Source: Octopus sinensis
Lineage: Eukaryota
Assembly: GCF_006345805.1 (NCBI RefSeq)
Contig: NW_021831741.1
Coordinates: 1 to 34,246, forward strand
Reading direction: 5' to 3'
DNA: 34,246 bases
The notes beneath the pieces are model-generated. The model saw only the letters and a program-made list of their open reading frames with translations, was not told the origin of the DNA and searched no databases. How positions within the stretch are numbered: position 1 is the first letter of the stretch; every line of letters starts with the position of its first letter. The position numbers and the translations under genes were made by a program. Below are positions 2,316 to 31,535 of this stretch, in pieces.

Positions 2316-5300
2316 AAGAACACATTAAATATTCTAACAATGTACCAATTATCTCATTTAATTAACACTTGATAACAGTTTTCTCTTAGCTTTGTCTTTC
2401 TCTTTTTGTAACTGTGCCAAATCTATGGCATGGCACAGGCCTCTCATCACTAGAATTCACTAATCAACATTCCTCTCTAATTAAGTAAAACTGAGGCCAT
2501 AAAGATGTCCTTTATGTGCATACCCTCCACCCCGCACACAATCTGTCCCCTAAAATTCATCTACACAAGCCAAATTCCATACACCCTTTCCCACCAATAT
2601 CCCTAAGAAGATATAAAATTTAAGGTGAGGGTACATGATGTTCCTATGACAAAATAAGTTTACATTTCATACATACAAATGTAAGAGAGTTAATGAATTA
2701 TAGCTTATTAATTATCATGATAATTAGGTATATATGTAATACAATGACACTGTGCTTGACGGTGCAATACTATATATCAATATAGATTGTATATAATCTG
2801 AGTAAAGAACATATCACCTTCACTACAATAAATATGATTGTGTTTCAGCACAGCTAATATTATGGTAGTTCCATGAGCAAACGAAGAAAGATATAACCAA
2901 GTCCACTGCCAAGTACTAATGATTAATTCATTTCCTGGTCAAATAACAATGACTAACTTCCATTAAATAATTTGAACACAACAATCAAGACCAAAGGGTG
3001 AAACACTCAGAAAACTGTGCCTCTTTTAACATTAATATCATCTAAAATCCAACAAGTGTGAGAAAAAGAATGACTATATGGATGGTAAAAGTTGTTCAAA
3101 CAATGTAATAAGTGAATATTATATATAGTTACAATCAAGGATGTGTGTGTTCAAGTCACACAGGGAACTCATATATAATTCATATCTTTATATTTTATGT
3201 CAACACCAATATTTTGTTTAAATGCAAACAGATGTTCACCGTCCAATACTAAATTTAATATTTAATCAACGTTAATGATCATTATACTTATACTCTTAGA
3301 GATTTGATTTTTAATCCTTTTAATTTATAACAAAGTTATTCTGACCTGAGACATTCAGGGTACGTACCTAAACAACATATCATGACAGACATCTGGTTAC
3401 ATAACAACAACAACAATAACCTATCAGAAAACTTAGGCAAGACCTTAGTAGCAAAAGAAACAAAAGCTTTCTCGTTAACTCACCTGTTTACAAATAAACA
3501 ACAAAATGTTTTAGTTCTCTGTCCTAAAAGACATCATTAACTCTATTGTGTCTTCTTATCTATTTTACCAACCACGTTAACCTGGATTTTATGAAATTTG
3601 AGTGGAATATCTAATAGAATCATTTTACACCTAATCTTACAAATAGAAATTAAGAACGGAACTTGTTCTCGATCAGCCTGACAAGCAAAATCACTCAGGC
3701 GAAGATAAATGCTATAGAAATCTATAAAGTACTGTTGTGGAGGCGCAACGGCCCACGGTTGTAGGATCGCGGTTTCGATTCCCAGACCGGACTTTGTGAG
3801 TGTTTATTGAGTGAAAACTCCTAAAGTTCCACAAGTCTCTGGCCGGGGGGTTGTAGCGATCCCTACTGTTCACTTTCTCCACAACATTATCTCACTCTTT
3901 CTTCTGTTGGCCTGCTCGCTTAGCCAGCGGGGTGGCACCACTTGAAGGCGAAGCGCATTGTAACCAGCGATGTGTAGCAACATCTGATAGCCTGGTCGGT
4001 CACAGTGATAACGGTGATAAGGTACTGTTAATTTATAGAAATCTATAAGGTACTTTTAATTTATACTCACTAACTGCCCCTGCCAACATCTTGGCTTCCT
4101 TCTCTTTAAAATTTGGACTCCCTGAGATATGTGTTTTCAAGTTTTATACTTTATAGAAAAATCTTAATAATCTATATTATTGTGAGCCATTCCTATCATA
4201 AATGAACAACCGGTGACCATTATGGTTTTGGAAGACAGATTCAACGGTGTTACCATTTAATAGGTCAATATTTAGGTGCACAACAAAATAACCTTCTAAC
4301 CTTCTTAACTCTTAAATCTCTGATCTTCTTAAATCTCCGCTGCCTATTAAGACATCCTACATAATCTAACAATGACCAACTTGGTTGACATTAGAATGAA
4401 GCAGAAGATAGGAAAATGTTGGTTTGGGAAGTCTAGAGGTGAGAGAACTATGCCATATCATAGATCTGGCACAGATATAAGAAACGAAAGCCAAAACGGA
4501 GAGATTAACAGTGATATCAATGGAAAATTAAATGAGTAGTTGTGTGTTCGAATCTGATATTTCAAAAGCTGAATCGAAGTTCCGGCAGCAGAATTGGGTA
4601 TTATCACCCTTACAAGACAGAACAAAATACCCATCCGATAAAAGTAATTTAATGATCAATATTCTAATACAGAGTTAATATTCAATTTTGTTTTATTTAC
4701 TTTCTAGGGTATATATTTGAAGTTGAGACCTTCATTGTATATACCGCAAGAGATGATATCTCATATCAAGCAATTATTTGAGATCTTTATGTATTTCCGG
4801 AGGACAACTTTATAAAATATCCATGTCGTTTTTTACATGTTGCCAGTATTTACACCTACACAGAACAACCGATTTAACAGTCAAACTTTCTAATGTTGGT
4901 TCTCAAACTCTCAGCTGAGATTTTATGATTAAATATCTTACTTCAGCAAAGCTCGAAATGATGTTCTTGGGAATATCTTTGTCTTTAATCATCATCTTCC
5001 CTAGATACTGATAAATCATTAATCAACTTTGATGACTCACAATCAATTATTAGAAATTGGTGTTTACTGATATAAAAACGGATGTACTGATATTTCAGTG
5101 AGTTACTAGTAATATTGCTGTATCATTCATTAGTCTTATGTTGCAGCATGATTCTTTAGTCTTATGTTGCGGCATGATTGATTAGTCTTGTGCAGGACCC
5201 TCTTGAAATGTGACAAGTCTTCTATTTGGATAAAGACAATGTTTTGTGGATGTAGTGTGAGATACACTATCACAGAGAAATGACACCTGGAACATCTTTC

Positions 5301-8226: not shown

Positions 8227-11200
8227 ACTGCTAGTGCGTGTTTGTAGATTATTTTAGGATGAAAGCTTGCATATGATGACTGACCGGGGAACAGAAGAAA
8301 GATATTGCGCAGGCAGATATATCCCAATGCATGGCTAATACTAGTGACAATACAATATATTGCTAGAATTAAAAGTAAACGAATAAATAGACATGATTAT
8401 ATAAAAAAATAGGAAATATACTGGTTTATCTTGTCATTGCCAGGAAATACTTACGCTGGTGGTATAAAGGTTTTTAATTTTTCTTTCAAATTTCCATCCT
8501 TGATGAGGTCCAGTGGTGACATACCCTCCATATTTTTCTGGTAAAAGGTGGCTCCGGATTCGAATAGGTAACTCGCAACAATTATGGAACAGAGCCTATC
8601 TTTCTTGTTCAAAGAGAGTTTCCAGGACCACTACATAGGTTGAAATGTTGTAATATAAATATAAAGATAAGTTCAATAATAAACGAACATAGATAAAGAA
8701 ACAAAATCATAGCTTCATGTCAAGAAGAGGAAATATAATGGAACAAATATCAAAATAATCAAATACAAAACACTGCCTGTTAAAGGCAAGTGGTCATACC
8801 AAACGAAATACTTATGGAAGCATGACAAGCTACATTTTTTGTGTTATATATAAATATAACACAACAACATGACAACAATGTAAGTTATATCAGGAAAGAG
8901 AACAACTACAACATAGGAATTTCTTCAGACATAACAAAATCAATATCACACAGACATATCCAAACATATCAATAATGTTTCCATAATTAATCAATAAACA
9001 TCTTTGGATGATGAAGGTGAAGTAAAGGAAGTAGGAATTAGTGTCACAGTTGAGGCAGCACACCAACACATTGTAGTTATTAAACTGTTCAAACGGTTAG
9101 TCTGATAAACAATTCCAGTATGTCGGGTGGTAGCTGGGTACCGGAGGAGGTCCTTGTCACCAAAGGAGGCATTATTACAATTTACAGATGACCATCAACA
9201 GTCTGAAATAGATTCACACATCTGTAGTGACTTTTATTTATATGGGAAAGAAACAGTTGACAATAAACAGCATCAGATCTACCGATGGATAGATGTTGGT
9301 GTCTTTGTATATGAACATACGTATTTGTACATACAAAACCTAAGTACAAATAAACACAGGAAGGCCCTTGTGTCATTGCACGCCTTCTCTAATGTTCTAA
9401 ATTTCAACAATGTTGTGACATTTCCACAAGATGTCAGAGCATATGAATGGTATAAAAGAAGTATAATAGAGAACTGTTTCAGGACGAATTCCTCATAGAA
9501 TGGACTGGATCTATTTATCACGGTACCAGCACTATAATTGTTATCGTCTATCATGTCTTCTACCCTGTAATATTGTTATTTGGGGATATCTCCTCTCCCC
9601 AATAGGTCACCTCTCCTTCACAGTGTGATGGCTGTGTTTATATTGGACAACGTATGAGACGGGTCACCTTCTCCACCGTTGAGAGGCGATACCTTTGAGG
9701 GTGGAAGAAGATGGAATATCGTTTGTTACATAATACAACTAGTTTTAGCAGGAAAGATTGGATCACGAAATGGTAATGGAGGACGGGGTCGATAGATGTG
9801 TATTGACACGTGACAAGCAGCATCTATGTTTCGCGGCTCTCTCTCTCTCTCTCTCTCTCCCTCTCTCTCTCTCTCTCAAACACACACAAATACACATATA
9901 TTTATTCACAAATAATTTAAAAACTTACCTGATCTAACACGGTCATGTGCTCCACCTCAGAATGAAATTCTTTGGTTGCTAACGCCAGGTGCAGGCAATT
10001 ACTGCCTTCTTTGTCGACAGCATTTACATTCGCACCCCTGGCTATCAGCCTCTGAATTATTCCGAGGTGACCGTCCGAGACAGCTTCAAGCAATGGTGTC
10101 CTATATTTTTTGTTCACAATTTCTAAATTCACCGAATCCTTTGTGGAGGTAAAAATGGAAAAGGAAAATTTACATGAAAATCAGGGTTGATATCAATGTC
10201 ATTACAGTTTTCTACTGGGTACTAGATCAAACTGATCAAATACATTTGATGTTTGTCAGTGAAATAAATCTTCCATAAGGACCTTCTATAACCTGATAAA
10301 TGTGTTTGTTAGAGACATGATAAACATATTAAGATGTCCTACATTTGCCCCTCACAATAGAAAATTGTAGGGCAACAGAACTAGAGTAAACACATGATTA
10401 GCAGATCAAGTCAAGTAAAGAAGAATTATAATTTCTAATGTATACTTTTGATGTTGCTACATTAATAAAGGGTTCATAAAACTGCTGAGCCGGTTAGCGT
10501 CCACATGCATAAAACTAATGCACACACACGCACGCACACATAAAAATCAGTTCACGAGAATATGCATCACAATGACCGTTTCGACCCATCTTGCATCGGT
10601 TGCTTGCGGGTGGGCTACTATACATGTTGTGTTGCATCCTACAGTGCAGATGCATCTCATCGGGTGCCTTGTTTTAATGTAAAGATACCTCACTAAATAT
10701 ATTCAGTTTCACTTGACATGTTGTTGCTAGGAGCTTCTTGGATTACAACATGAGATACAACAGCCTTCTGGCAACAACAACATTCCAAGCGAAACCGAAT
10801 ATATTTACAGAGGTATCTTCTTTAAAGCAAGACACCCGATGACATGCATCTGCACCGGAGGATGTACCACAACCAGTTATACAATATCCTACCTGCAAGG
10901 TACCGATGCAAGATGGATTGAAACAAACGTTGAGATGAATAAAAATTCTCATTAACTCCATTTTCTGCTTCCCTCAGTCATTATAAACTGAACGAACACT
11001 GCAGAATATATGAGGTAGATCCAGTGTCACTTATAGCTCAACTGTGGATAACATGAGGTAACCGAAACAGCGAAAGAGCTTTAAGGGGTATACTACTAAA
11101 TGTATACCCAAATTCCAAATAATTACAAATACATACACACGCACACACACTCACACACACACACACACACATACAGGGAGGATGATGCCTTGCTCGGCAA

Positions 11201-13867: not shown

Positions 13868-14163
13868 CTATGTCTATACATATATACATATATGTATGTA
13901 TGTATGTATATATATATATATATATTTACACAGAAATGAGTACAACACACCCATACATATATACATGGTTGTAGTGTAAGGAGTTTTTTCCCCAACAATA
14001 CACTCTTCCACGTTGAATCCCTCTGCATGGAAACTCAGGCAAGTATATTCTACTCTTACCTCGGGCTGAAAAAAATATTATAAGTGGATTTGGTAAATGA
14101 AAACTAAAAGAAGCTTCATAACAGGTGTGTGTCTATGTGTGTGCCTATGTATATGTGTGTGAG

Positions 14164-14204
<41 letters not shown>

Positions 14205-17200
14205 TGTGTAGTGGTTCAGCAAAGAGGCTGAAAGGATAAGTGATATGCTTAAAATAATAAAATTACTGGGATGATTACAGTTGACCACAAATTCAAGGTG
14301 ATGCCCCAGCATGGCCGCAGTCAAATGCCTGAAACAATATATATATATGATTGATTGATTGATTGATTCTAGTTTCAGCTCATGAGCTGTGACCATGCTG
14401 GGGCACCGCCATTTGGTGTTGCTACATGGTTTTACTTCACGAAAGCTTTTTAGCAACTGCCATTTGGTGCATGAGAGAGTTCGATGCAGCTGCCCTCATC
14501 TGCACCTCCTGCCGTGAAGTTGGTTCACCTGGGATACCTGACAGGAAGAGATCCAGTTTCATTTTAAAGACATCTGCATCCACCCCATGCAGGTCTCTTA
14601 GGTTCTTCGGGAGGATATTGAAGAGCTGTGGGCCTCGGAAGCCCAGGCTATCACAGTATCTTGTCCTACATCTTGATGGCAAATTTGGAGTCCTAGGCAC
14701 CACGCAGTGGCGCCCAGTTCTTGCATTTGTGTAACTCTCGATGCCAAAGTTTGGGACAAGTCCCTCCAGGATCTTCCAGATGTATATTATGGCATATCTT
14801 TCCCGCCTACGCTCCAAGGAATAGAGTTTTAATCTCTTTAGTCTTTCCCAGTAGCTTATATTCTGCTGCATAGAGGCTACCTTCTTCGTGTAGCTACGTT
14901 GGATCGCCTCAAGTTCTGTGATCAACTTGACACTAGATGGTGACCATAACTGAGAGCAATAGTCAAAGTGGCTTAGGACAAGTGTCCTCCAGAGGACCAT
15001 CATGGTTTCTTGTTCTCTTGTTCTAAAAGTTCTGAAAATCCATCCGGCCAGTCGTCTACATTTCATTGCCAATTTAGCAACATGTACACGAAAGGTTGCG
15101 TCATCACTCATGTAAATACCCAGGTCACGCACTGATTGTGCCTCTGGGATTGCAATTCCTCCGGGTCCAGTGTATTCATTGGGTATTGCATTTAGTTTTG
15201 CATGCTGATAGTATAAAGCTTGAAACTTTTCAGCATTGAACTGCATGCTATTCTTTTCAGCCCACTTGTATATTTTGTCCAGCTCACATTGCAGGCGTTT
15301 AGTGTCCTCAGGGTTCTGTATTGCCTGTGAAACTTTTGTATCATCTGCATAACTTGTGATCGTGGCTCTCTGCGTGGCTGAGGGCATGTCTGAGAGGGCC
15401 ATTATGAACAGTAGTGGTCCCAAGACAGTGCCCTGCGGAACACCGCTCACTATTTGCGTGTTAATGGAATTGGCTACTACCACCTGACTTCTATCTTTCA
15501 GAAAGTCATGAAGCCATTCTCCCAGTTTTCCAACTATGTTGAGATCACGCAGTTTGTGACATATCATTCCATGATCGACTTTATCAAAGGCCTTTGCAAA
15601 GTCGAGATATATCACTTCCACATTTGAGTGGTTGAGCAGTCGTTTCAGCACCCAGTCATAGTGTTGTAGGAGCTGAGTTAAACAGCTTCTCCCTGGTCGG
15701 AAACCATGTTGGGTGTCGGGCAGCAAGTCATTTTCTTCAAGGAAGGTGATCAGTTTCTTTATGACTATTCGTTCCATGACCTTGCTGATGTGTGAGGTCA
15801 GAGAGATAGGTCTGTAGTTCTTGGCCTCCGCTCTGCTACCTCCTTTATGAATAGGGCATATTTTACCTTCCTTCAGTTTTCTTGGAAGTTTGCCAGCTGC
15901 AAGGAAGCTCTGAAAGAGGAACTGCAGTGGTCTTGCTAGGACTCTCTTACATACTTTTAGGAGGATTGCCGGGAATCCATCGGGGCCAGTAACTGAGTCT
16001 GTTTTCATTTCATCTATAGCCTTTATTACATCGTCTTCCTTTATATCGATGTAATCTATCGTCGCCGCCTCTGATTTTATATCTGCAGTGGTAAAGAAGT
16101 CAGTTGGATTGGCGATTTGGAAATGCCCAAGGGGTGGAGTGAAAACACTCTTGAATTGCTCATTCAGTATTTCACTTACACTCATTGGTTTTCCTGTGAG
16201 TGTGCCATCCTTTTCAAGGAGTGGCCCTATCCTACAGTGCACTGTAGCTGTTTCTTTGGCATACCTGTAGAAAGCTCTGAGGTTAGATTTTATGTTGTCT
16301 ATAGCCCAGGCTTCTTTGTCTGCTCTTTCCTTTTCATGGGAGAGTTGCAGACATTTTTCAATTTCCAAAAGTTTTATTTTCAGGCGGGACTTTTCACTGC
16401 TTTCAATTTGTTTGTTTAGGCGATTTGAAATGTTTGTACGCCGTCTCATTAAAATTTTCCTCTCTCTGGGGATTTTGTTCTTGTGTACAGTGGCCTTTCT
16501 CTCTGGGACACATTTGTAGCATATGGCTTGCATTACAGACATGAATTGTTGAAGTTTCACGTCGATGTCTGGCGAGGAGGGAATTCAGGCCAGTTTTGTT
16601 TGAGGATCTCTTTCTCAATTTGTTTCCAGTTTGCCTTATGGTAGTTCAAGCTGGAAAGATTCTGAGGGTTTCTTGTAGGCTGCATGTCCGTGCTCTCTTT
16701 TGGCCCGTACATGGTCAGCTCTACCATGTTGTGATCCGAGAGTAGTGTCGGTGTCACTTTCACATTATGGATGAGATCCATATTATTTGTGAAGCAGAGA
16801 TCCAGTGTGTTACCTTCCCTGGTTGGTTGGAGTATTACTTGCTCCATGTACAGGGTGTTGATGAGGTTCAGGAGGGACCTCGCCTGTCCTCGTTCACATC
16901 TTGTCATTCCTGGGAGAGAAAGACCCTCGGGCCATTTGACATTGGGTAGATTGAAGTCTCCCATAAGAAGTACACTTATGTGTTGTTCTAATGTGATTAG
17001 AACTTCTATTTTTATAAGGCAGTCTTCAAACTTGCCTACATGACTTGGGGGCATCTGGAGGGCGATATGTAGCACACACAACTACCTCAAGTTGCCTTAT
17101 ATGTACAATTAGTGTGTCACACACCGAGTTTGAATATGACAAAAGGACCTGGGGTGTGAGGTCCTCACGGATGTACATAGCAACTCCTCCATGACTCCTT

Positions 17201-19669
17201 TCTTTTCTGTCGGTCCGTAGTACAACATACTGTGGTATGTGTAATTCCGCATCTGCTATGTCCGGTTTCAGGTGCGTTTCCGTAAGTGCTATGCATAAGG
17301 CTTGATTGCATGGAAAGTTTGCCACAGGTGAGGATCGAACTCATGACCTTCAGATTACTCGGTTGTTAGAGCAGGATTATGAGACTGACGCGCTGCCTAC
17401 TGCGCTATCTGTCTCTTTTATGTATACCTGATGTCTGTTATATTGTCTCTTTTATATATACCTGATGTCTGTTATATTTTGGTTCATCTCATAATGACCT
17501 TGTTTCATTTGACCATTAAAGGTATTATTATCAGTGGTGGAGGTCAGTTGGACTGTCAACACCGCTAATATCATCATCAACATGATCAATATACAATTCC
17601 TCCACAAACACAAGGGTTTTGTAGTACATGTGATAAATCTATTCCCATTATTTTACTGGTACCTTGATAATATTTATATTATACAGATCAATATAATACT
17701 GGAGAGTGTATATAATATGTATTTATTAACTAACCTTGGACAGCATCGCACACACCACTTTATACCATCGCCTGAAAGTAATGGATGAGGAAAGAAAAAC
17801 ATGAAAAAAACAAACATCACACAGCTTGAGATATAGTTATTAGTCATTAAAGAAAACAAATGCAATTAGGTCACAATAACTTAATTACAGCAATTATTAC
17901 ACCACATACTCACACACACATATATTATTCAATACACACTCTAACAGTAGAACATAATATAACACCCCTGAGTAAACCCAGAAATGTAAAGACAGGAAAA
18001 AATGCTAAGAATTCTCACAGCTTATATAAACATGACATTTAGGAAGGAAAGAAGGGCTACAGGTAATATATGAACCCCAGTACATGACTGGTATTGTTTT
18101 TATCAACCTTGCAAAGATGGAAGACGTTGACCTTGGCAGGATTTGAACTCTTAACGTAAAGAGTCGTAAATAAATAACACAATTATTTTCTCTAAAAGTA
18201 ATAAAGAAACAGAACAGGAGGAAAATAGAAGAAGACAGTTTATAAAGGAACCCTGGGTATTACTGGTATAGATTATATTGACCCAGAGTGATAGTAAATA
18301 TTCTGGTAGGATTTGAACATGGAACATAAAAGAGACAGATGTAAATACTGTAAGGGGATGATTCTGTATTTAGCCCAGGGTCAGAGTAAATAGGGAAACT
18401 ACAAGAGAGAGAGAGAGAGAGAGGGGGAAGAAAGAGAGAGAGAAAAAAGTAGTTCTAAATGGGATGAAAGGAAGAAGAGAGAGAATTTGAACCTGTGACG
18501 TTGAGGAAATGGAGAACGAGATGAAGTAAAGTGTCCAGTCAGGCAACAACAATAACAATGATGATGATTAATTAATAAAGTAGATTACAGTGCGAAAGAG
18601 AGAAGAAAGACAATGACCCCATGGTGGGATTATGACATGAATGACTGAATGAAAAAGAAACAAACATTATTGAAAACATAAAAGAAACAGATTTGGATAT
18701 TCCAGATCCAATGGGGACTTACCTCCGAACTGCCCAATGCAGTGGTGTGTCTCCATCGTTGTTCACCACATTGGCATCGATGCCATTGTGACCCAACAAC
18801 AGCTCGACAGTGTGCAAGTGTCCCCGCGAACAGGCCCAGTGCAGCGGTGTTTCACCATTATTAGACCGTGCATTGACCTGAAAAAGAAAAGAATAAAAAC
18901 ATTAAAAATGGTGTCTGAAAGGGGAGTCGGGTGGTGAAGAATTAAAAGAAAAACTCACAGAAAATGAGAAGAGAAGGAATGAAATTAATTAAACAGGTGG
19001 AATGATTGGGGTGGGGAGTAGGTAATAGAGATTTCTATTGTATATACACACACGCGTATACACAAATACATATGTACATATAAATATATTTATACACACA
19101 CACACAAACACACGCATATAGGATGAATAACTCAATAAATAAACACATAGTGCAGCAAAATGTGTGTGTGTGTGTGTGTGTGTGTTCATAGTTACATTTA
19201 TTCTATTATTCTTTCATTTGTTTCAGTCATGTGGATGTGGCCATGCTGGAGCACTGTCGTTAGTCGAGCAAATCAACCCCAATAAGCCTAGTACTTATTT
19301 TATTAGTTTCTTTTGCAGAAACGCTAGTTTACGGGGACGTAAACACATCAGCATCGGTTGTCAAGCGATGATGGGGACAAACACAGACACACAAACACAC
19401 GTACGTACACACAGACACACATAACACACACACATATATATATATATATATATGTACACACACACACACACACACAATATATATATATATATATATATAC
19501 ATATATAGGACGGGCTTCTTCCAGTTTCCGTCTACCAAATCCACTCACAAGGCTTAGGTCGGCCCGAGGCTATAGTACAAGACACTTGCCCAGGTGCCAC
19601 TAAGAGGGACTGAACCCGGAACCATGTTGTTTGTAAGCAATCTACTTACCACACAGCCATTCCTGTGCC

Positions 19670-19705
<36 letters not shown>

Positions 19706-19969
19706 ATAATATATATATAGTATATATATATTATATGCTGTTGTATGTTCCTCATGAGCTTTTTAATGTAAACATTTCTTGATGAAATTTTCTGAAAATC
19801 CATCCCTTTCAATGTCTTAATCAACAATTATGTCTGGAGTTGTGATTGGTTTGAAACTAATCAAATGCTTCCGTTTTCTCAGCATAATAGTAATCGAAAA
19901 TCAATGTTTATCATTAAACAGTAGGAAACACCAGAAAGTTATGGAGGAAAATACGGGGGCTCAGGAATA

Positions 19970-20286: not shown

Positions 20287-21333
20287 CATACTATATAGGA
20301 TGAAGTTTTTTTTACAGAAAAATATTCCATCAAAAAATGTGGCAGCATACTAAAATAACTTTACAGTTAAATTATAAACAACTTATAAATAAGGGTTAAA
20401 GAAAAGTATTTCAAAGCCAATTTTCTGATAACAGACTTTTAAATCGTCAATTTCCACATATTATTTACTCGCTACAGAGAAAAAACACTAAGAACTGAAA
20501 ACGGCGAAAGCCGGTCAATAGAATGTTTTTTAAAAAGTTCGTTATTTCTATATTGAATCAATTTCGGAATTAATCTCATAATAGATTCTTTCGTCTTCAG
20601 TAGAACATACGAAAGGATATGAATAAGATACTTACCTCACTGCCCCGAGATAGTAAGATCTCCACAGCATGAGGTCGATCGCTGAGACTAAAAGATAGAA
20701 ACATTGACTAATTTACATGAAATATGAAAATATTTTGGCTTTGAGACGAAACAGTATCGTCATCATCATCACCATCATCATCACCTGCACTATTATCATC
20801 AATATCATGTTCATCAACATCATTACCATCAGCATCATTACCACCACCTCTATCATTGACACAATCATCATCATCATCATCATTATCATCATCGCCATCA
20901 TCACCATCATCATCATCGCCTTCATCATCATCACCATCTTCATCACCTGCACTATTATCATCAATATCATGTTCATCAACATCATTACCATCATCATCAT
21001 TACCACCACCTCTATCATTGACACAATCATCATCATCATCATCATTATCATCATCGCCATCATCACCATCATCATCATCGCCTTCATCATCATCACCATC
21101 TTCATCACCTGCACTATTATCATCAATATCATGTTCATCAACATCATTACCATCATCATCATTGCCACCACCTCCATCATTGACATAATCATCATCATCA
21201 TCATCATCGCCATCATCACCCTCATTGCCAACACCATCATCATCATCATCGTTCATAGCCACCATCATCATCATCACCATCATCATCAACAGAGTCATCA
21301 TCATCACCGTCTGCGTCATCATCATCATCATCG

Positions 21334-21366
<33 letters not shown>

Positions 21367-22138
21367 CCATCATCATCAACAGAGTCATCATCATCAACAG
21401 AGTCATCATCATCACCGTCTGCGTCATCATCATCATCGTCATCATCATCATCATCAGCTCCATCATCAACAGCAAGATCGACCTCATCAATATCATCATC
21501 ATCATTATCACCATCATCATAATCACTATCATCATTATCATCATGATCAACATCACCATCATCATTTTCATCATAGTCATCATCATCCTCATCACCATCA
21601 TCATGAGCAGCAGCAGCATCATTATCATCTGCATCAACATATTAATCATAATCATCATCTTCATCATAATCACCATCAAAATCATCATTATCCTCCTCCC
21701 CCTCCTTCTCATCATCATCGTCCTCATCATTATTATCATCATCATCATCATCATCATCATCATCGGGATTGTTATGTTTGAATAATGACTAATGAATTGG
21801 ATCGATGACTAAAGAGAAGCTTGTTGTTGTTGTTGTTGTTGTTTGCTAGTCTGCTGTTGTGCTGTTGTGCTGCTGTCCCACTACTATGGCATCTTTGGAT
21901 ATTGAACCTGTGACTGCAATTGCAACAAATTTACAAACAAAAACACACCTGCAGATTTTACTTGATTCTCAACTTACCTCCACACAGCCCAATGTAAGGC
22001 TGTATTACCAAACAAGGAGTCTTTTGCTCCCACCCCTCTTCCTGCTTCTAGCAATAATTCGAGTATTCTTCTATCGGCGCCCAATTGAGAGGCCAATATT
22101 AAAGGAGTTTTTCCAAATATATCAATAGGTTTATTTAT
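1105..22138 (-). CDS. Multi-exon ankyrin-repeat + C3HC4 RING protein gene (MIB2-like C-terminal architecture, putative E3 ubiquitin ligase); 3' end runs off the window and the 5' end is uncertain
   Basis: Ten exons with GT-AG boundaries and matching phases (0-2, 2-0, 0-2, 2-0, 0-0, 0-2, 2-1, 1-1, 1-1, 1-1) give one uninterrupted frame: [16 protein letters not shown]...[44 protein letters not shown]...[44 protein letters not shown]...-WSWKLSL...KTFIPPA-CTYC...CPTC. Family assignment is from known ankyrin and RING consensus motifs. Confidence 0.88.
1338..1727 (+). mobile_element. SINE-like repeat (RTE-tail family) with (GAT)n(GAG)n tail
   Basis: Paralogue of 553-852 inside the duplicated block; has extra upstream sequence. 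Confidence 0.75.
1394..2152 (+). repeat. Duplication block B, copy 2
   Basis: Colinear with 553-1258. Confidence 0.93.
1978..2055 (-). CDS. Linker micro-exon copy 2 (78 nt, phase 1-1)
   Basis: Acceptor tatttatttcag, donor G|gtgagt; open frame [25 protein letters not shown]; 21 nt longer than copy 1 with frame preserved. Confidence 0.68.
2980..3341 (+). repeat. Segmental duplication block A, copy 2
   Basis: Direct match to 185-556. Confidence 0.95.
3737..4033 (+). mobile_element. tRNA-derived SINE with ~24-bp target-site duplication
   Basis: Head gtggaggcgcaacggccc...ggtttcgattcc (B-box-like); flanked by tatagaaatctataaagtactgtt (3713-3736) and tatagaaatctataaggtactttt (4034-4057). Confidence 0.85.
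4071..4121 (-). CDS. Linker micro-exon copy 3 (51 nt, phase 1-1)
   Basis: Acceptor atatctcag, donor A|gtgagt; open frame (G)[16 protein letters not shown]; flanks homologous to those of the other two copies. Confidence 0.62.
5434..5576 (-). CDS. RING finger exon (143 nt, phase 2-1; unspliced read-through stops at 5417)
   Basis: Acceptor ttgttctacag; C-x2-C-x11-C-x-H-x3-C-x2-C-x8-C-x2-C (C3HC4, MIB/XIAP-type spacing); donor TTTG|gtaaga at 5433. Confidence 0.9.
6882..8019 (+). mobile_element. Decayed Tc1/mariner transposase, DD37D (maT-type), with right terminal repeat remnant
   Basis: N-terminal HTH-like region from ATG 6882, then KNFDQDQ, MVLGVVS.EG.VMPP.FFP, RPYVFQ*DSA and WPPNSSDLN(P)LD; 37 residues between catalytic D2 and D3 after one frameshift. 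Ends at tgtcctcaaatatcttacacacc followed by (TA)n; left TIR not seen. Confidence 0.88.
8455..8630 (-). CDS. Degenerate ankyrin/linker exon (176 nt, phase 0-2)
   Basis: Acceptor aacctatgtag, donor GC|gtaagt; open frame [58 protein letters not shown]. Its phases bridge the flanking exons exactly. Confidence 0.88.
9606..9690 (+). mobile_element. Possible second GIY-YIG relic (Penelope-like)
   Basis: Frame reads [20 protein letters not shown]; upstream 9130-9500 is coding-like but unassignable. Confidence 0.3.
9929..10138 (-). CDS. Ankyrin exon (210 nt, phase 0-0)
   Basis: Acceptor tttttacctccacaaag, donor CAG|gtaagt; encodes [41 protein letters not shown]. Confidence 0.93.
10545..10965. repeat. 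Long imperfect inverted repeat (foldback/MITE-like), arms ~190 bp, spacer ~30 bp
   Basis: Core 10578-10924: gtttcgacccatcttgcatcggt...gtgcagatgcatctcatcgggtg...aagatacctc is mirrored on the opposite strand; roughly 80% complementary by eye. Confidence 0.92.
11175..12615 (+). mobile_element. Decayed RTE-clade LINE, reverse transcriptase region
   Basis: Broken frames give RGIKLL...[48 protein letters not shown] and ADDLV; many stops and frameshifts. Confidence 0.88.
12650..13059 (+). mobile_element. 3' region of an RTE-associated/SINE-like repeat with internal ~40-bp tggcacc/gtgcc tandem units and a (GAT)n tail
   Basis: Core ggtggttggcattaggaagg...gttaaa(t/c)gatgatgat is shared with 553-852 and 1338-1727; lies directly downstream of the RTE ORF. 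Confidence 0.7.
13215..13320. repeat. Compound microsatellite (TA)n(GA)n(GACA)n(GATA)n
   Basis: Seen directly. Confidence 0.95.
13640..13730 (+). mobile_element. Short diverged copy of the RTE-tail repeat family
   Basis: ggttggcgatatggagagcatccagctgcagaaa followed by a gatgat tail; resembles the family core. Confidence 0.5.
13745..13925. repeat. (TA)n/(TACA)n microsatellite
   Basis: Seen directly. Confidence 0.95.
13965..14337 (+). mobile_element. tRNA-derived SINE with internal (TG)n and a CR1-like tail
   Basis: Degenerate tRNA-like head; ends ccccagcatggccgcagtcaaatgcctgaaac; homologous to 19218-19670 and 30368-30689. Confidence 0.75.
14348..17319 (-). mobile_element. CR1-clade LINE: near-complete ORF2 (APE endonuclease + reverse transcriptase) with two frameshifts, 3' UTR and (ATCA)n tail
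   Basis: APE motifs TET, GGV, YRPP, GDFN, LDL and SDH in ORFs 17026-17325 and 16557-17081. RT motifs [45 protein letters not shown] and YADD in the 707-aa ORF 14437-16560. Frameshifts lie near 17045 and 16580; the tail is (TGAT)n on + at 14348-14368. Confidence 0.95.
17320..17414 (-). tRNA. Elongator tRNA-Met(CAT)-derived copy with a 22-nt insertion at the canonical 37/38 intron site; probable pseudogene
   Basis: Minus strand TAGCGCAGTAGGCAGCGCGTCAGTCTCATA[ATCCTGCTCTAACAACCGAGTA]ATCTGAAGGTCATGAGTTCGATCCTCACCTGTGGCA closely matches the eukaryotic elongator Met tRNA. D arm, anticodon arm and A/B boxes are intact; the acceptor stem is disrupted (only ACAG/CTGT can pair, out of register) and the T-stem has one mismatch. 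Confidence 0.8.
17410..17477. repeat. 34-bp tandem duplication (2 copies) abutting the tRNA 5' end
   Basis: tgtctcttttat(g/a)tatacctgatgtctgttatat at 17410-17443 and 17444-17477. Confidence 0.9.
17735..17771 (-). CDS. Ankyrin micro-exon (37 nt, phase 2-0)
   Basis: Acceptor ctttcag, donor AAG|gttagt; encodes (R)[12 protein letters not shown] and supplies the second ankyrin helix plus the phase needed to join 10138. Confidence 0.82.
18075..18350 (+). repeat. Two diverged fragments of the interspersed repeat also found at 33194 and 33841
   Basis: accccagtacatgactggta...ggatttgaactc at 18075-18155 and gacccagagtg...ggatttgaacat at 18280-18325. Confidence 0.55.
18723..18877 (-). CDS. Ankyrin exon (155 nt, phase 0-2)
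   Basis: Acceptor ttctttttcag, donor AG|gtaagt; encodes [51 protein letters not shown]. Confidence 0.93.
19218..19670 (-). mobile_element. Full-length tRNA-derived SINE (same family)
   Basis: Minus-strand head ggcacaggaatggctgtgtggtaagt...ggttccgggttcagtcc, central (TA)/(TG) microsatellite, tail ccagcatggccacatccacatgactgaaac. Confidence 0.85.
19968..20295. repeat. Interrupted (TA)n microsatellite field
   Basis: Seen directly. Other simple repeats lie at 2276-2312, 6121-6148, 8175-8222, 9837-9877, 27345-27430, 28290-28420 and 32468-32575. Confidence 0.95.
20636..20687 (-). CDS. Small ankyrin exon (52 nt, phase 2-0)
   Basis: Acceptor ttctatcttttag, donor GAG|gtaagt; encodes (S)[17 protein letters not shown], completing the ankyrin repeat between the flanking exons in frame. 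Confidence 0.88.
20757..21763. repeat. ~1 kb degenerate (CAT)n array with a 162-bp higher-order repeat
   Basis: The variant string catcacctgcactattatcatcaatatc recurs at 20779, 20941 and 21103; a second variant (caacagagtcatcatcatcaccgtctgcg) recurs near 21285 and 21395. Confidence 0.95.
21978..22138 (-). CDS. Ankyrin exon (161 nt, phase 0-2)
   Basis: Acceptor ttcattacag, donor AG|gtaagt; encodes [12 protein letters not shown]...LLLEAG and [10 protein letters not shown]. Confidence 0.92.
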
Positions 22139-22179
22139 CTGTAATGAAGAAAGTGAGGACATGTGAAATAGAGAAATTC

Positions 22180-22809
22180 CATTCTCTCTCTCTCTCTCTC
22201 TTCTTCTTGTCTCTCACTCTCTTTCTCGTCTTTTCCTCTTTCTCTCTTCTTCTCTCTCTATATCCCTTTCATTTCTTTCTACTCTTTCTTTTCTCACTTT
22301 TCTCTCTCTTTCCCTTCTCCTTCTCTGTCTTCTTTCTCTTTCTCTCTTTGGGTCTCTTTTACTCTCTTCTCTTTCTTTTCTCTCTTTTCCCATTTTCTTT
22401 CCTCTCTTTTCTCTCTCATTCCTTCATCTCTCTTTTTCTTTTTCTCTTATCGTTCTCTTTCTCATTTCTCAATTTCTCTATTTCTCTCTCCGTATCTCTC
22501 TCTCTCTCTTTCATTTCTTCTCTTTCTATCTTACATTCTTCTCTTTCCCGTTTCTTATATCTTTCTTTCTCCCTTTCTCTTTCTCCCTCTTTTTCCCTCT
22601 CTCTCATGCTTTTCTCTCTTTTTCCATTTTACTTTTCTCTGTTTCTCTCTTTTTCTTTCTCTTTCTCTCTTTTTCCATTTCTCTTTCTTTATCTCTCTCT
22701 CTATTACCTTTTTTCTTTCTTTCTCTCTCTGTCTCCTTCACTTTTCCTTTTCTCTCTTTCACCCAACCTTTTTCTTTTTCGTCTCTCTTTCTCTTTTACA
22801 TTTATCACT

Positions 22810-22847
<38 letters not shown>

Positions 22848-24978
22848 TTCTCGTTGCCTTTTCTCATCACCCTCTTTCTCTTTTACTGTCTCTCTTTCTT
22901 GATGTCCTTTCTTTTCCCTTTTCTCTCTCTCTCTCCCTTCCTCTCTCTCTTCATTCATTCTCTCACATTCTTTCTTTTCTACTCTCTCTCTATGTCTCTA
23001 CACTTTGTTTCTTCTTTCTTCTCTTTCCTCCTCTCTCTCTCTCTTTCTTCTTTCTTCTCTCTCACTATTTCCCACTCTATTTTTTTCCTATTTCTCCTTT
23101 CCATCTCTGTCCTCTCTCTTTTTCTCTTCCTCTTTCTTCCTCTCTTTCGCTCGTTTTCTTTGTCTGTCACTATCTTCACATTCCTCATCTTCTCTCTTTC
23201 TTCTCTATTCTGTTCTCTCTTTCTTTTCGCTCTCTCTCTTTTCTCCTTCTTTCTCGCTTTTCCCTCGTTTTTTTTCCTTCTTTTTCCCTTTCGTTTTTTT
23301 TTTTCCTTTTTCCCTTGTCCTCTCTCTCACTCTTTCATTTCTCTCTTTCTTCCTCTCGTTTCTTTTTCTCTCTCTTTCTTTTCTCGCTCTCTCACTTTTT
23401 TCTCCTTCTTTCTCCCTCTCGTTTTCTTTTTATCCTTCTTCCTCTCTCTCACTCTTTCTTCCTCTCGTTTCTTTTCTCTCTCTCTTTCTTTTCTCGCTCT
23501 CTCGCTTTTTTCTCCTTCTTTCTCCCTCTCGTTTTCTTTTTATCCTTCTTCCTCTCTCTCACTTTTTCATTTCCCTCTTTCCCCCTCTCGTTTTCTTTTT
23601 ATCCTTTTTCCTCTCTCTCACTCTTTCATTTCTCTCTTCCTTCCTCTCGTTTCTTTTTCTCTCTCTCTTTCTTTTCTCGCTGCCTCGCTTATTTCTCCTT
23701 CTTTCTCCCTCTCGTTTTGTTTTTATCCTCTTCCTCTCTCTCACTCTTCATTTCTCTCTTTCCCCTCTCGTTTCTTTCTCTCTCTTTCTTTTCTCGCTCT
23801 CTCGCTTTTCTCCTTCTCCCTCCCTCTCTTTTCTTTTATCTTCTTCAGCTCTCTCACTCTTCATTTCTCTCTTCCTTCCTCTCGTTTCTTTCTCTCTCTA
23901 TTTCTTTCTTGCTCTCTTACTTTTTTCTCCTCTTTCTCCCTCTCGTTTTCTTTTTATCCTTCTCCTCTCTCTCACTCTTCATTTCTTCTTTCTTCCTCTA
24001 GTTTCTTTTTCTCTCCTCTTCTTGCTCTCTTACTTTTTTCTCCTTTTTTCCCTCTCGTTCTCTTATCCTTCTCCCTCTCTCTCACTCTTCATTTCTCTCT
24101 TCCTTCCTCTCGTTTCTTTTCTCTCTCTTTCTTTCTCGCTCTCTCACTTTTTTCTCCTTCTTTCCCCCTCTCGTTTCTTTTATCCTTTCCTCTCTCTCAC
24201 TCTTTCATTTTCTCTCTCCTCCTCGCGTTTCTTTCTCTCTCTCCTTTTTTCTCACTCACTCACTTTTTCTCCTTCTTTCTCCCTCTCGTTTTCTTTTATC
24301 CTTCTTCCTCTCTCTCACTCTTTCATTTCTCTCTCTCTTCCTCTCGTTTCTTTCTCTCTCTCTCCTTCTTTTCTCGCTCACTCACTTTTTTCTCTTTCTT
24401 TCTTTCTCTCGTTTTCTTTTTATTATTCTTCCTCTCTCTCACTCTTTCATTTCTCTCTTTCTTCCTCTCGTTTTCTTTTTATCCTTCTTCCTCTCTCTCA
24501 CTCTTTCATTTCTCTCTTTCTTCCTCTTGTTTCTTTTTCTCTCTCTTTTCTCGATCTCTCGCTTTTTTCTCTTTCTTTCTCCCTCTCGTTTGCATTTTAT
24601 CCTTCCTCCCCTCTCTCACTCTTTCATTTCTCACTTTCTTCCTCTCGTTTCTTTTTCTCTCTCTCTTTCTTTTCTCACTCTCTCACTTTTCTCTCCTTCT
24701 TTCTCCCTCTCGTTTGCTTTTCATCCTTCTTCCTCTCTCACACTCTTTCATTTCTCTCTTTCTTTCTCTCGTTTCTTTTTCTCTCTCCCTTTCTTTTCTC
24801 TCTCATTTTCTTTTTTCAATCTCCTTCTCTTTATCTTTTCTCTCCTTTTTCTCTCTCTCTCTTTCTCTGTTTCATTTCTCTTTTTGTCTTCTCTATAGTT
24901 CTCTCTCAATTTTCATTTTCTTTCTTCTATTTTTCTATTTCTCTCTTCATTTTTCTCTTTCTTTTTCTTTTTCTCTTC
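22180..24978. repeat. 2.8-kb polypyrimidine (CT-rich) tract with a ~110-120 bp minisatellite core (~23320-24790)
   Basis: Recurrent unit ctctctcactctttcatttctctctttcttcctctcgtttc...ctccctctcgttttctttttatccttcttc; almost no purines on +. Confidence 0.93.
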
Positions 24979-24980
24979 TA

Positions 24981-25165
24981 CTTGTTTCAGTCATGAGAGT
25001 GCGACCATGCTGGGGCTCCTCCTCGATTTTGTCTTTTATGTGTGATCCCTTTTCTGTCTAAATAACACCAACCTATAGCTCTCTTTTGCTTCAGAGCTAA
25101 GCAACAGGGATGCAAATACACCAACACCGGTTATCAATTAGCAGTTAGGGACACACTAACATAGA
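24981..25165 (-). mobile_element. 3' half of the same SINE family
   Basis: cttgtttcagtcatgagagtgcgaccatgctgggg...aaatacaccaacaccggtt on +. Confidence 0.7.
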
Positions 25166-25244
25166 CACACATGCATACGCACGCACACAAACAAACACAC
25201 ACACATATATATACGAGTTAATAACACCTGTAAGGATGTGTTTT

Positions 25245-30367: not shown

Positions 30368-30689
30368 CTTGTTTCAGTCATTTGACAGCAACCATTCTGT
30401 AGCACCACCTTGAAGGGTTCTAGTTAAACAAAACCCCCGGACATATTTTCAGCCTAGTATTTATTCTATCGGTATCCTTAAGCGAACCTCTAAATTATGG
30501 GGATGTAAATACACCAACAACGGTTGTCAATCGATGATGAAGAGTACAAATAACACACACGTATATATAAATATGTGACGGGTTTCTTTCACTTCCCATC
30601 TACCAAATTCAATCTCAAGGCTTCAAGGAGTTGAACGCAGAACCATGTGTTGGGGAAGCAAGCTTCTTACCACACAGCCATTCCTGTGA
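30368..30689 (-). mobile_element. Diverged full-length copy of the same SINE family
   Basis: Tail cttgtttcagtcatttgacagc and head cttaccacacagccattcctgtg on + match 19218-19670. Confidence 0.78.
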
Positions 30690-31535
30690 CTATATACACA
30701 GATATATACATATATGAACTTTTTAGTGTCCAGGGAGTCATTATGCCAATATCCATTAACACACGCACTGGTTCGATTCCACTTTTTTATTGTTTGTCAA
30801 TATTAAATTCATTTGTTTACAAAATATTTTCTTTTCTAGGATGAACATAATTTTTACACAATTCATCGATGAACGAAATGTAAAGAAACATACAGGCACG
30901 AACACACATTTACCCACTCTCACAGACACACACACACACACACACACACACAAGCATATGCCAGCACACGCATAGTTGTATATAAATATGTATGCCTATG
31001 TATGAGTGAATACACACACATACATATAGATGTATAATGATAAATGAAAATTTATTGAACCGATTTTTATGAAGCTTGGTAAACGAATGAAATAAAGTCA
31101 CGTGATTGAATTTAGAAACCATAAAAAGGAATTGCATGTTACGGGATTTATTGTGGATTTTTTTAGATATTTTACTTCAGAACATTCAGTATGATGCGTA
31201 GAAGACAACATAATATTTTTTCAATCATCTGAAGTCCAAAGCTCCCAAAGTTGAAAGTCTATGGAGACACGAGAAGAAAAGTAGGGCAGGCACGGAGACA
31301 AAGAAATGTCGTAGAGACACAACAGCAACAGGAAGTAAAACATCAGTTTCAAGCAACTAGGCAAGCCTGTTGGTGGGAACAAGAGACACCAGAGGGGAAG
31401 CGACAGAGGTTCGAGTCTCAAGCCATTACAAAAGCCAGCTTAAGAGAATATACGTTAACAGAACAACTTCAAAGTAACGCAGATAAAAAATGCCCGCTCT
31501 AGAGAACAGGAAACATCAAAGTAACGACAAGTCAG

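Follow-up and report, generated by a model that had tools for sequence, protein, structure and literature searches.

An intron-bearing tRNA-Met copy joined to a 5'-truncated CR1-like LINE in Octopus sinensis: a candidate template-switch chimera

We describe a locus in a 34,246-nucleotide stretch of Octopus sinensis DNA (contig NW_021831741.1, positions 1 to 34,246, here called the window), animal-type in character and rich in repeats and AT, where a segment derived from an elongator tRNA-Met(CAT) (17320..17407, minus strand) is joined to a 5'-truncated CR1-like long interspersed nuclear element (LINE; 17310..14348, minus strand), both in the same orientation. We consider it probable, with some reserve, that the two parts were made in one retrotransposition event, during which the reverse transcriptase (RT) switched from the LINE RNA to a nascent pre-tRNA-Met and so produced a bipartite chimeric retrocopy. 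Short interspersed nuclear elements (SINEs) are thought to originate when a LINE RT jumps from LINE RNA onto an RNA polymerase III (Pol III) transcript, the standard hypothesis of their birth being that such a template switch puts a small-RNA head onto LINE-derived RNA (PMC5786205, PMC4758252). Natural examples with both parents intact are few, and most involve mammalian L1 and U6. If our reading is true, the evidence would now also cover a mollusc and LINEs with recognition of their own 3' tail, and the jump would be located in the nucleus, on nascent transcripts ending in UUU. The process itself is known and accepted; what is new is the LINE type and the host, whose genome already has a tRNA-derived SINE that uses the same LINE tail.

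Results

An earlier reading of this stretch (the original prediction) had proposed a tRNA copy that keeps its intron and its A and B boxes, followed with no spacer by a near-complete second open reading frame (ORF2) of a LINE that had lost only a short N-terminal part, with a 34-bp tandem duplication at the tRNA 5' end and a first TTTT run near 17147. The duplication was recovered by Tandem Repeats Finder (TRF; period 34, 2.0 copies, 97% identity) at 17410..17478 on the minus strand, with units at 17477..17444 and 17443..17410 that differ by one mismatch, and the first run of four Ts (T4) after the tRNA, one of six inside the LINE, lies at 17144..17141. The tRNA copy was seen correctly in so far as a 22-nt insert occupies position 37/38 and both boxes are intact, but it scores below threshold and its apparent 5' acceptor strand is not authentic. 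The account given of the join and of ORF2 had to be corrected: a nine-base spacer, AACTTTCCA (17319..17311), separates the tRNA discriminator from the first LINE-homologous base, the codons that had been read across it as NFP are not LINE-encoded, and about 71 codons of ORF2 are gone together with the start codon and the conserved LLNIRGL...LRDL endonuclease (EN) block, and two frameshifts break the EN region.

The tRNA segment covers tRNA positions 8-73, as defined by ARAGORN in relaxed mode, by Rfam and by comparison with a tRNA-Met gene on contig L017. On the minus strand it comprises an intact A box (17407..17396), the anticodon CAT (17381..17379), the 22-nt intron ATCCTGCTCTAACAACCGAGTA at the 37/38 site (17377..17356), an intact B box (17342..17332), the 3' acceptor strand CTGTGGC (17327..17321) and the discriminator A (17320). 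Relaxed ARAGORN reported a tRNA-Met(cat) at 17415..17320 with intron i(39,22), and the Rfam tRNA model gave 25.5 bits (E=0.0034), below its gathering score of 29; at default settings and at the gathering score, respectively, these programs found zero tRNAs in the window, and neither found a second tRNA or a tRNA cluster in its 34 kb. From T8 (17407) to the discriminator (17320), 64 of the 66 exon bases are the same as in the L017 gene, the differences being A49, in the T stem, and T69, and the window intron resembles that of L017 (ATCCACAGTTCTAACACTGAGCA). Because of this agreement with a real gene, and because a 21-mer from the segment occurs once in the window against 0 expected, a chance origin of the tRNA similarity is excluded on sequence grounds.

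A protein search with the antisense open reading frame (ORF) across the tRNA returned one match, P0121 on the eukaryote contig L002, where a tRNA-Met gene is present in full, interrupted at the same site by an intron of 19 nt and ending in a T11 terminator; we used it as a reference, not as the source gene. More than 120 further intron-bearing tRNA-Met loci came from a gapped DNA pattern scan of metagenome contigs. In all, contigs L002-L122 (metagenome and ENA) hold 133 pattern matches with introns of 11-36 nt at 37/38, many of which begin with ATC, and tandem clusters of 2-3 such genes are often found (for example on L008, L009, L016, L017 and L040). An intron-specific pattern scan of prokaryote genomes and viral contigs gave zero matches. 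By these comparisons the 37/38 intron is normal for the elongator tRNA-Met(CAT) class in many eukaryotes, where it is widespread and accompanied by animal-type exons.

The window intron is bracketed by a 5-nt direct repeat, TAATC (17356-17382), which allows six registers, one of them the canonical 37/38 register. We dropped the idea that the 22-nt insert is a random indel flanked by TAATC, since introns at this site are the rule across the gene class of the reference panel. We also dropped the primer-binding site of a long terminal repeat (LTR) element as an explanation of the tRNA similarity, given that the segment is a near-whole, intron-bearing tRNA and not an 18-mer.

For comparison of the ends of the segment we used a panel of 88 animal-type tRNA-Met genes with full flanks. 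The acceptor stem is paired at 7/7 positions in 87 of these genes, and the 5' acceptor strand reads G[CT]CT[CAT]G[GTA] in all 88. In the window, the seven bases before T8 are AGACAGA, which match the panel strand at only 1/7 positions. The 5-of-7 acceptor pairing proposed by ARAGORN uses GAGACAG with a bulge, and six of these bases belong to unit 2 of the tandem duplication and recur in unit 1; the duplication is upstream flank that abuts the tRNA segment, and its terminal GAGACA, present in both units, mimics a 5' acceptor strand. Both the mismatch and the location within a tandem repeat show that the authentic strand, tRNA positions 1-7, is missing, so that the copy begins only at about position 7/8. 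With an intron at 37/38 and both promoter boxes the segment resembles a functional gene, but it lacks a 7-bp acceptor stem and a passing score, and only TTT is found where a T4 terminator would be expected within about 10 nt of the discriminator. Judged by these features, it is a truncated copy and not a working gene.

Within the LINE, delimited by Pfam domains and DNA alignment, Exo_endo_phos_2 and RVT_1 were both detected in the minus-strand ORF2, indicating an apurinic/apyrimidinic (APE)-type endonuclease together with an RT. Among its relatives P0001, an ORF2 of 1033 aa found at full length on Logan contig L001, is the closest, and the window LINE is 90.2% identical to it at the DNA level from L001 nt 258 (= window 17310) down to the 3' end. 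ORF2 runs from codon ~72 to its stop codon (14437..17310, minus strand; Pfam, alignment with L001 and N-terminal protein alignment), and its first conserved protein block is CNQALCIAL. An indel map against L001 places the two frame-breaking changes, a +1 near 17051 and a -1 near 16582, in the EN region (17310..~16560), followed by an intact 707-aa ORF that contains the RT and the C-terminal domain (16560..14437); a further -1 lies at 14451, close to the stop codon, and three other indels are in-frame. Once corrected for frameshifts, the LINE has 0 in-frame stops in 954 codons and a ratio of nonsynonymous to synonymous substitution rates (dN/dS) of 0.24 relative to L001. The low dN/dS and the lack of stops suggest that most of the 10% divergence from L001 arose in active lineages, and by the same measures the window copy is young and only slightly decayed since its insertion. 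As a LINE, the product is dead on arrival, because the start codon and the first endonuclease motif are missing.

At the opposite end, the LINE has a 3' untranslated region (UTR; 14348..14436) with the conserved tail GGCGGTGCCCCAGCATGGTCACAGCTCATGAGCTGAAAC, identified by alignment with L001 and with SINE tails, and finishes in an (ATCA)5 microsatellite (14368..14348; TRF (TGAT)5.2). Two more relatives, L123 and L124, share about 65% protein identity with the window LINE and have the same 3' UTR end (GGYGGTGCCCCAGCATGGCCRCAGC..GCTGAAAC), followed in their case by AAAT- or AAATT-type repeats, so that the 3' end consists of a conserved UTR and a short tandem repeat, not of poly(A). In L123, a CCCH-like motif (CKFYKKENCWHGEEGSRCRFAH) is found at 1-330 in an open frame that reaches the start of ORF2 and is probably the end of ORF1. 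The sole named relative of the LINE protein is from the octopod Argonauta hians. For the family, CR1/L2-group is the safest label that the sequence allows. The 'CR1' of the original prediction fits the order of the domains, the tail made of a microsatellite, an ORF1 that is probably present, and the RT and C-terminal motifs, of which the window RT motif (20 residues) and YSLERRR presumably resemble those of chicken CR1. An RTE-type LINE was considered and dropped in view of the open frame upstream in L123 and the CR1-like appearance of the RT motifs. None of the three full-length relatives, L001, L123 and L124, has a tRNA head or any tRNA-like sequence, and all have ordinary LINE coding sequence at the corresponding place.

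The window also contains four copies of a tRNA-derived SINE, located by self-BLAST and tail alignment at 13960-14347 (plus strand), 19285-19731 (minus), 30369-30715 (minus) and ~24982-25200 (minus). Their 3' end (GGYGRTGCYCCAGCATGGYCRCAG..CTGAAAC) is common to the SINE and the LINE family, which makes this LINE family the partner of the resident SINE in a classical SINE/LINE pair. The first copy (13960..14347), old and diverged but recognisable by self-BLAST to the other three, lies tail-to-tail with the LINE and marks its 3' insertion site; this position suggests that the SINE's own (TA)n tail served as the priming site of the LINE. The tRNA segment itself was rejected as a head of the resident SINE, since the heads differ and the adjoining SINE copy is oppositely oriented.

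Between the tRNA and the LINE, the bases AAC and TTT (17314..17319, minus strand) correspond in position to the 3' trailer of a pre-tRNA and the start of a Pol III terminator U-run. The first TTTT begins 1-9 nt past the discriminator in 86 of the 88 panel genes (5 nt being the commonest distance, and 3 nt occurring in 13), and because the T-run of these 86 genes begins within that distance, we infer that AAC+TTT represents the 3' end of a primary Pol III transcript. There is no CCA directly at the discriminator, and the intron is retained. A CCA does occupy the last three bases before the LINE (17311..17313), where L001 has GCT in the pairwise alignment; it could be an untemplated addition or diverged LINE sequence.

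Elsewhere in the window, the plus strand is made almost entirely of pyrimidines for about 3 kb at 22100-25060 (56% T and 34% C, with 10% purine), a composition that accounts for the extreme GC and AT skews of this region; the stretch is a candidate triplex-forming tract or satellite. An imperfect ATC/CAT-type trinucleotide array of about 1.1 kb at 20700-21800, with only 6% G, yields long spurious ORFs of poly-Met, poly-Asp, poly-His and poly-Ile. At 10549-10957, 409 bp align with their own reverse complement at 74% identity, a long imperfect palindrome that is possibly a foldback element or resembles a miniature inverted-repeat transposable element (MITE). Finally, two 350-bp direct repeats (207-556 and 2992-3341) are 94% identical and 2.8 kb apart, and a 700-bp segment beside the first of them (558-1256) recurs about 850 bp downstream (1402-2153) at 82% identity; these repeats could form a terminal-repeat element or a local segmental duplication.

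Discussion

A template switch fits the locus best: the tRNA copy and the LINE share one orientation, the LINE has lost its 5' part but not its 3' end, and the tRNA part, with its intron retained, lacks CCA at its discriminator and ends in a 3-nt trailer with TTT. Of the three origins that the original prediction had offered, a switch of the RT from LINE RNA to an unspliced pre-tRNA is therefore the one best sustained by these features and by the two truncations. The 5' truncation of the tRNA points to a copy rather than to a gene in its original place, and the three parts of the locus appear similarly young, with 0 stops in 954 codons of the LINE, 2 changes in 66 exon bases of the tRNA and 1 mismatch in 34 bp of the duplication. 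Twin priming was also considered, and dropped because it would give an inverted orientation.

The course of events that we propose is drawn from the anatomy of the locus, the coordinates and the dead-on-arrival product being direct observations. Reverse transcription of a CR1-like LINE RNA would have begun at the 3' tail of that RNA, where the old SINE's (TA)n tail had been nicked. After about 2.96 kb, at codon ~72 of ORF2, the RT would have left the LINE RNA and carried on along an elongator tRNA-Met transcript made by Pol III, entering it at its 3' end; this RNA would have been nuclear and unprocessed, with intron and 3' trailer AAC-UUU retained and no CCA. This pre-tRNA would have been copied up to about tRNA position 8, and the end of the cDNA would have been joined to the upstream target DNA, a step that might, speculatively, also have produced the adjacent 34-bp flank duplication.

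Several observations weigh against a template switch. In a search for a target-site duplication (TSD) in the flanks of the LINE alone and of the tRNA and LINE together, only low-complexity TATATATA was found in common. The CCA at the junction is unexplained, the TTT would equally fit what is left of a terminator if the insertion had cut into a resident gene, and the tie between the 34-bp duplication and the insertion is speculative. Moreover, the evidence comes from one locus: the window ORFs of 707, 701 and 99 aa have no exact record in the contig collection, and searches with the junction and flank ORFs and with junction DNA in metagenomes gave zero matches. With regard to the TSD, CR1-type LINEs frequently leave none, and its absence weakens the claim of a single event rather than excluding it.

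The alternative that deserves most attention, though we regard it as rather unlikely, is that independent events met at one place: a resident tRNA-Met gene or pseudogene, a 5'-truncated LINE that later landed in its terminator T-run, by chance or through a preference for Pol III genes, and a separate rearrangement, perhaps that of the 34-bp duplication, which destroyed the first seven bases. A cut terminator would look just like AAC+TTT, genomic DNA would keep the intron and lack CCA, and no TSD encloses the tRNA and the LINE together. Retroelements that target tRNA genes exist (Dictyostelium TRE, yeast Ty3), although no element known here is a common targeter of real tRNA-Met genes. By our own rough estimate, which is not a tool result and assumes ~10^5-10^6 LINE copies and thousands of tRNA-like loci in a few Gb of DNA, chance alone should place a LINE within 10 bp of such a locus a few times in the whole genome. 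Yet such a history needs at least two extra coincidences, namely that the junction should fall just where the transcript ends, and that tRNA positions 1-7, which lie away from the LINE, should have been lost for an unrelated reason. It is also disfavoured by the lack of any tRNA cluster or second tRNA in 34 kb, by the absence of a T4 within about 100 nt downstream once the LINE is removed, and by the three full-length relatives, which show no tRNA association. The precise insertion of a LINE at the 3' end of a resident tRNA gene, which the original prediction had entertained, is thus weakened, by the missing 5' acceptor strand and the lack of any other tRNA nearby, without being lost.

A rearrangement at the DNA level, in which a broken tRNA gene and a LINE copy were linked by end-joining, or else a fault of assembly, seems very unlikely to us. 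The region is very repeat-rich and the three junction bases would suit end-joining filler, but the junction lies in unique sequence, with no common repeat to mislead an assembler, the break seems to coincide on one side with a transcript 3' end, and the whole arrangement has the orientation and polarity expected of target-primed reverse transcription (TPRT). It is no more plausible that the locus is a secondary copy of an older tRNA-LINE composite, transcribed at a parent locus by read-through or 5' transduction and retrotransposed via the LINE tail as part of a 'long SINE' lineage. The LINE 3' tail required for recognition is intact, as are the A and B boxes, and if a longer composite RNA had been retrocopied, a 5' truncation inside the tRNA would be the expected outcome. 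Opposed to it are the absence of a second copy of the junction in the window, in the protein searches with junction and flank ORFs and in a 38-mer DNA scan of metagenomes, the full-length relatives without a tRNA head, an ORF without a start codon and first EN motif, and the six T4 runs, the first of them at 17144, which would halt Pol III long before the tail.

Even fainter is the prospect that the fusion founded, or belongs to, a lineage whose tRNA-Met head still has functional A and B boxes and promotes Pol III transcripts containing LINE sequence; after an internal deletion, it would be a nascent SINE that uses the CR1-like LINE tail, caught before its amplification. With the relatives lacking a tRNA head and the junction found nowhere else in the window or the collections searched, the replicating tRNA-headed LINE subfamily of the original prediction has no support. 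Whereas a tRNA-derived SINE is a short, T4-free unit in many copies, the fusion measures 3.07 kb, contains six T4 runs and occurs once in the window. It is not a functioning SINE precursor, because its relatives have no tRNA head and the T4 runs would stop Pol III; the 'SINE/LINE birth intermediate' of the original prediction survives as an analogy, applied to a 3-kb element that is missing part of its endonuclease. With one locus and an accepted mechanism, a template switch in this genome would serve to illustrate the process more than to change its concept, unless chimeras of this kind proved to be numerous in a genome-wide census.

Among known systems, the elements that target tRNA genes, TRE5/TRE3 of Dictyostelium and Ty3 of yeast, are like the window locus in that a retroelement lies beside tRNA sequence. 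These elements occur in many copies at set distances, tens of bp from intact functional tRNA genes. In the window, by contrast, we see a truncated tRNA whose join to the LINE probably falls where its transcript ended, and related LINEs have no association with tRNA. A closer relation is seen to the tRNA-derived SINEs with LINE tails (Ohshima and Okada; Kojima 2018, PMC5786205), in which a head with A and B boxes likewise stands upstream of a LINE 3' tail recognised by the RT. In contrast to these SINEs, the window fusion has about 3 kb of LINE coding sequence and six T4 runs between head and tail, is single-copy in the searches made, and has as its head an intron-bearing tRNA-Met unrelated to the head of the resident SINE.

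Other sequences of tRNA origin that were copied by LINE machinery have been reported. Retropseudogenes of pre-tRNAs made by L1 (Schmitz et al. 2004, as cited in PMC4476161) share with the window copy an unprocessed nuclear pre-tRNA as the RT template; as that citation describes them, they stand alone and were produced via the L1 machinery, whereas the window copy is attached to a LINE, presumably the one whose machinery produced it. In primates, chimeras of tRNA and LINE-1 have been catalogued (bioRxiv 10.1101/2025.02.02.635956) in which, as in the window, tRNA sequence and LINE were inserted together. Most of these consist of a tRNA half (positions 1-37) that runs antisense to L1, an arrangement for which twin priming is held responsible, unlike the window copy, which is near-whole, sense and intron-bearing, with a trailer.

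The nearest counterparts are the chimeras of the U6/L1 type (Buzdin et al. 2002/2003; Doucet et al. 2015, PMC4476161). A switch of the template to Pol III RNAs, which leaves a small RNA followed by a 5'-truncated LINE, is described in the L1, L2 and RTE clades, and with LINEs of the stringent type, which recognise their own 3' tail, such copies arise only as chimeras (PMC4476161). The window locus departs from the U6/L1 type in its partner, an unspliced pre-tRNA-Met instead of U6, in its CR1-like LINE and cephalopod host, and in having no visible TSD (human U6 chimeras have one in 19/21 cases; PMC4476161), a small RNA 5'-truncated by about 7 nt and three extra junction bases. Nevertheless, the ground plan is the same: a sense copy of a Pol III RNA is joined, probably by the 3' end of that RNA, to a LINE truncated at its 5' but not at its 3' end, and the partner would be a nuclear, U-tailed Pol III transcript, in agreement with the UUU-3'OH ends known from nascent Pol III transcripts (PMC5737608).

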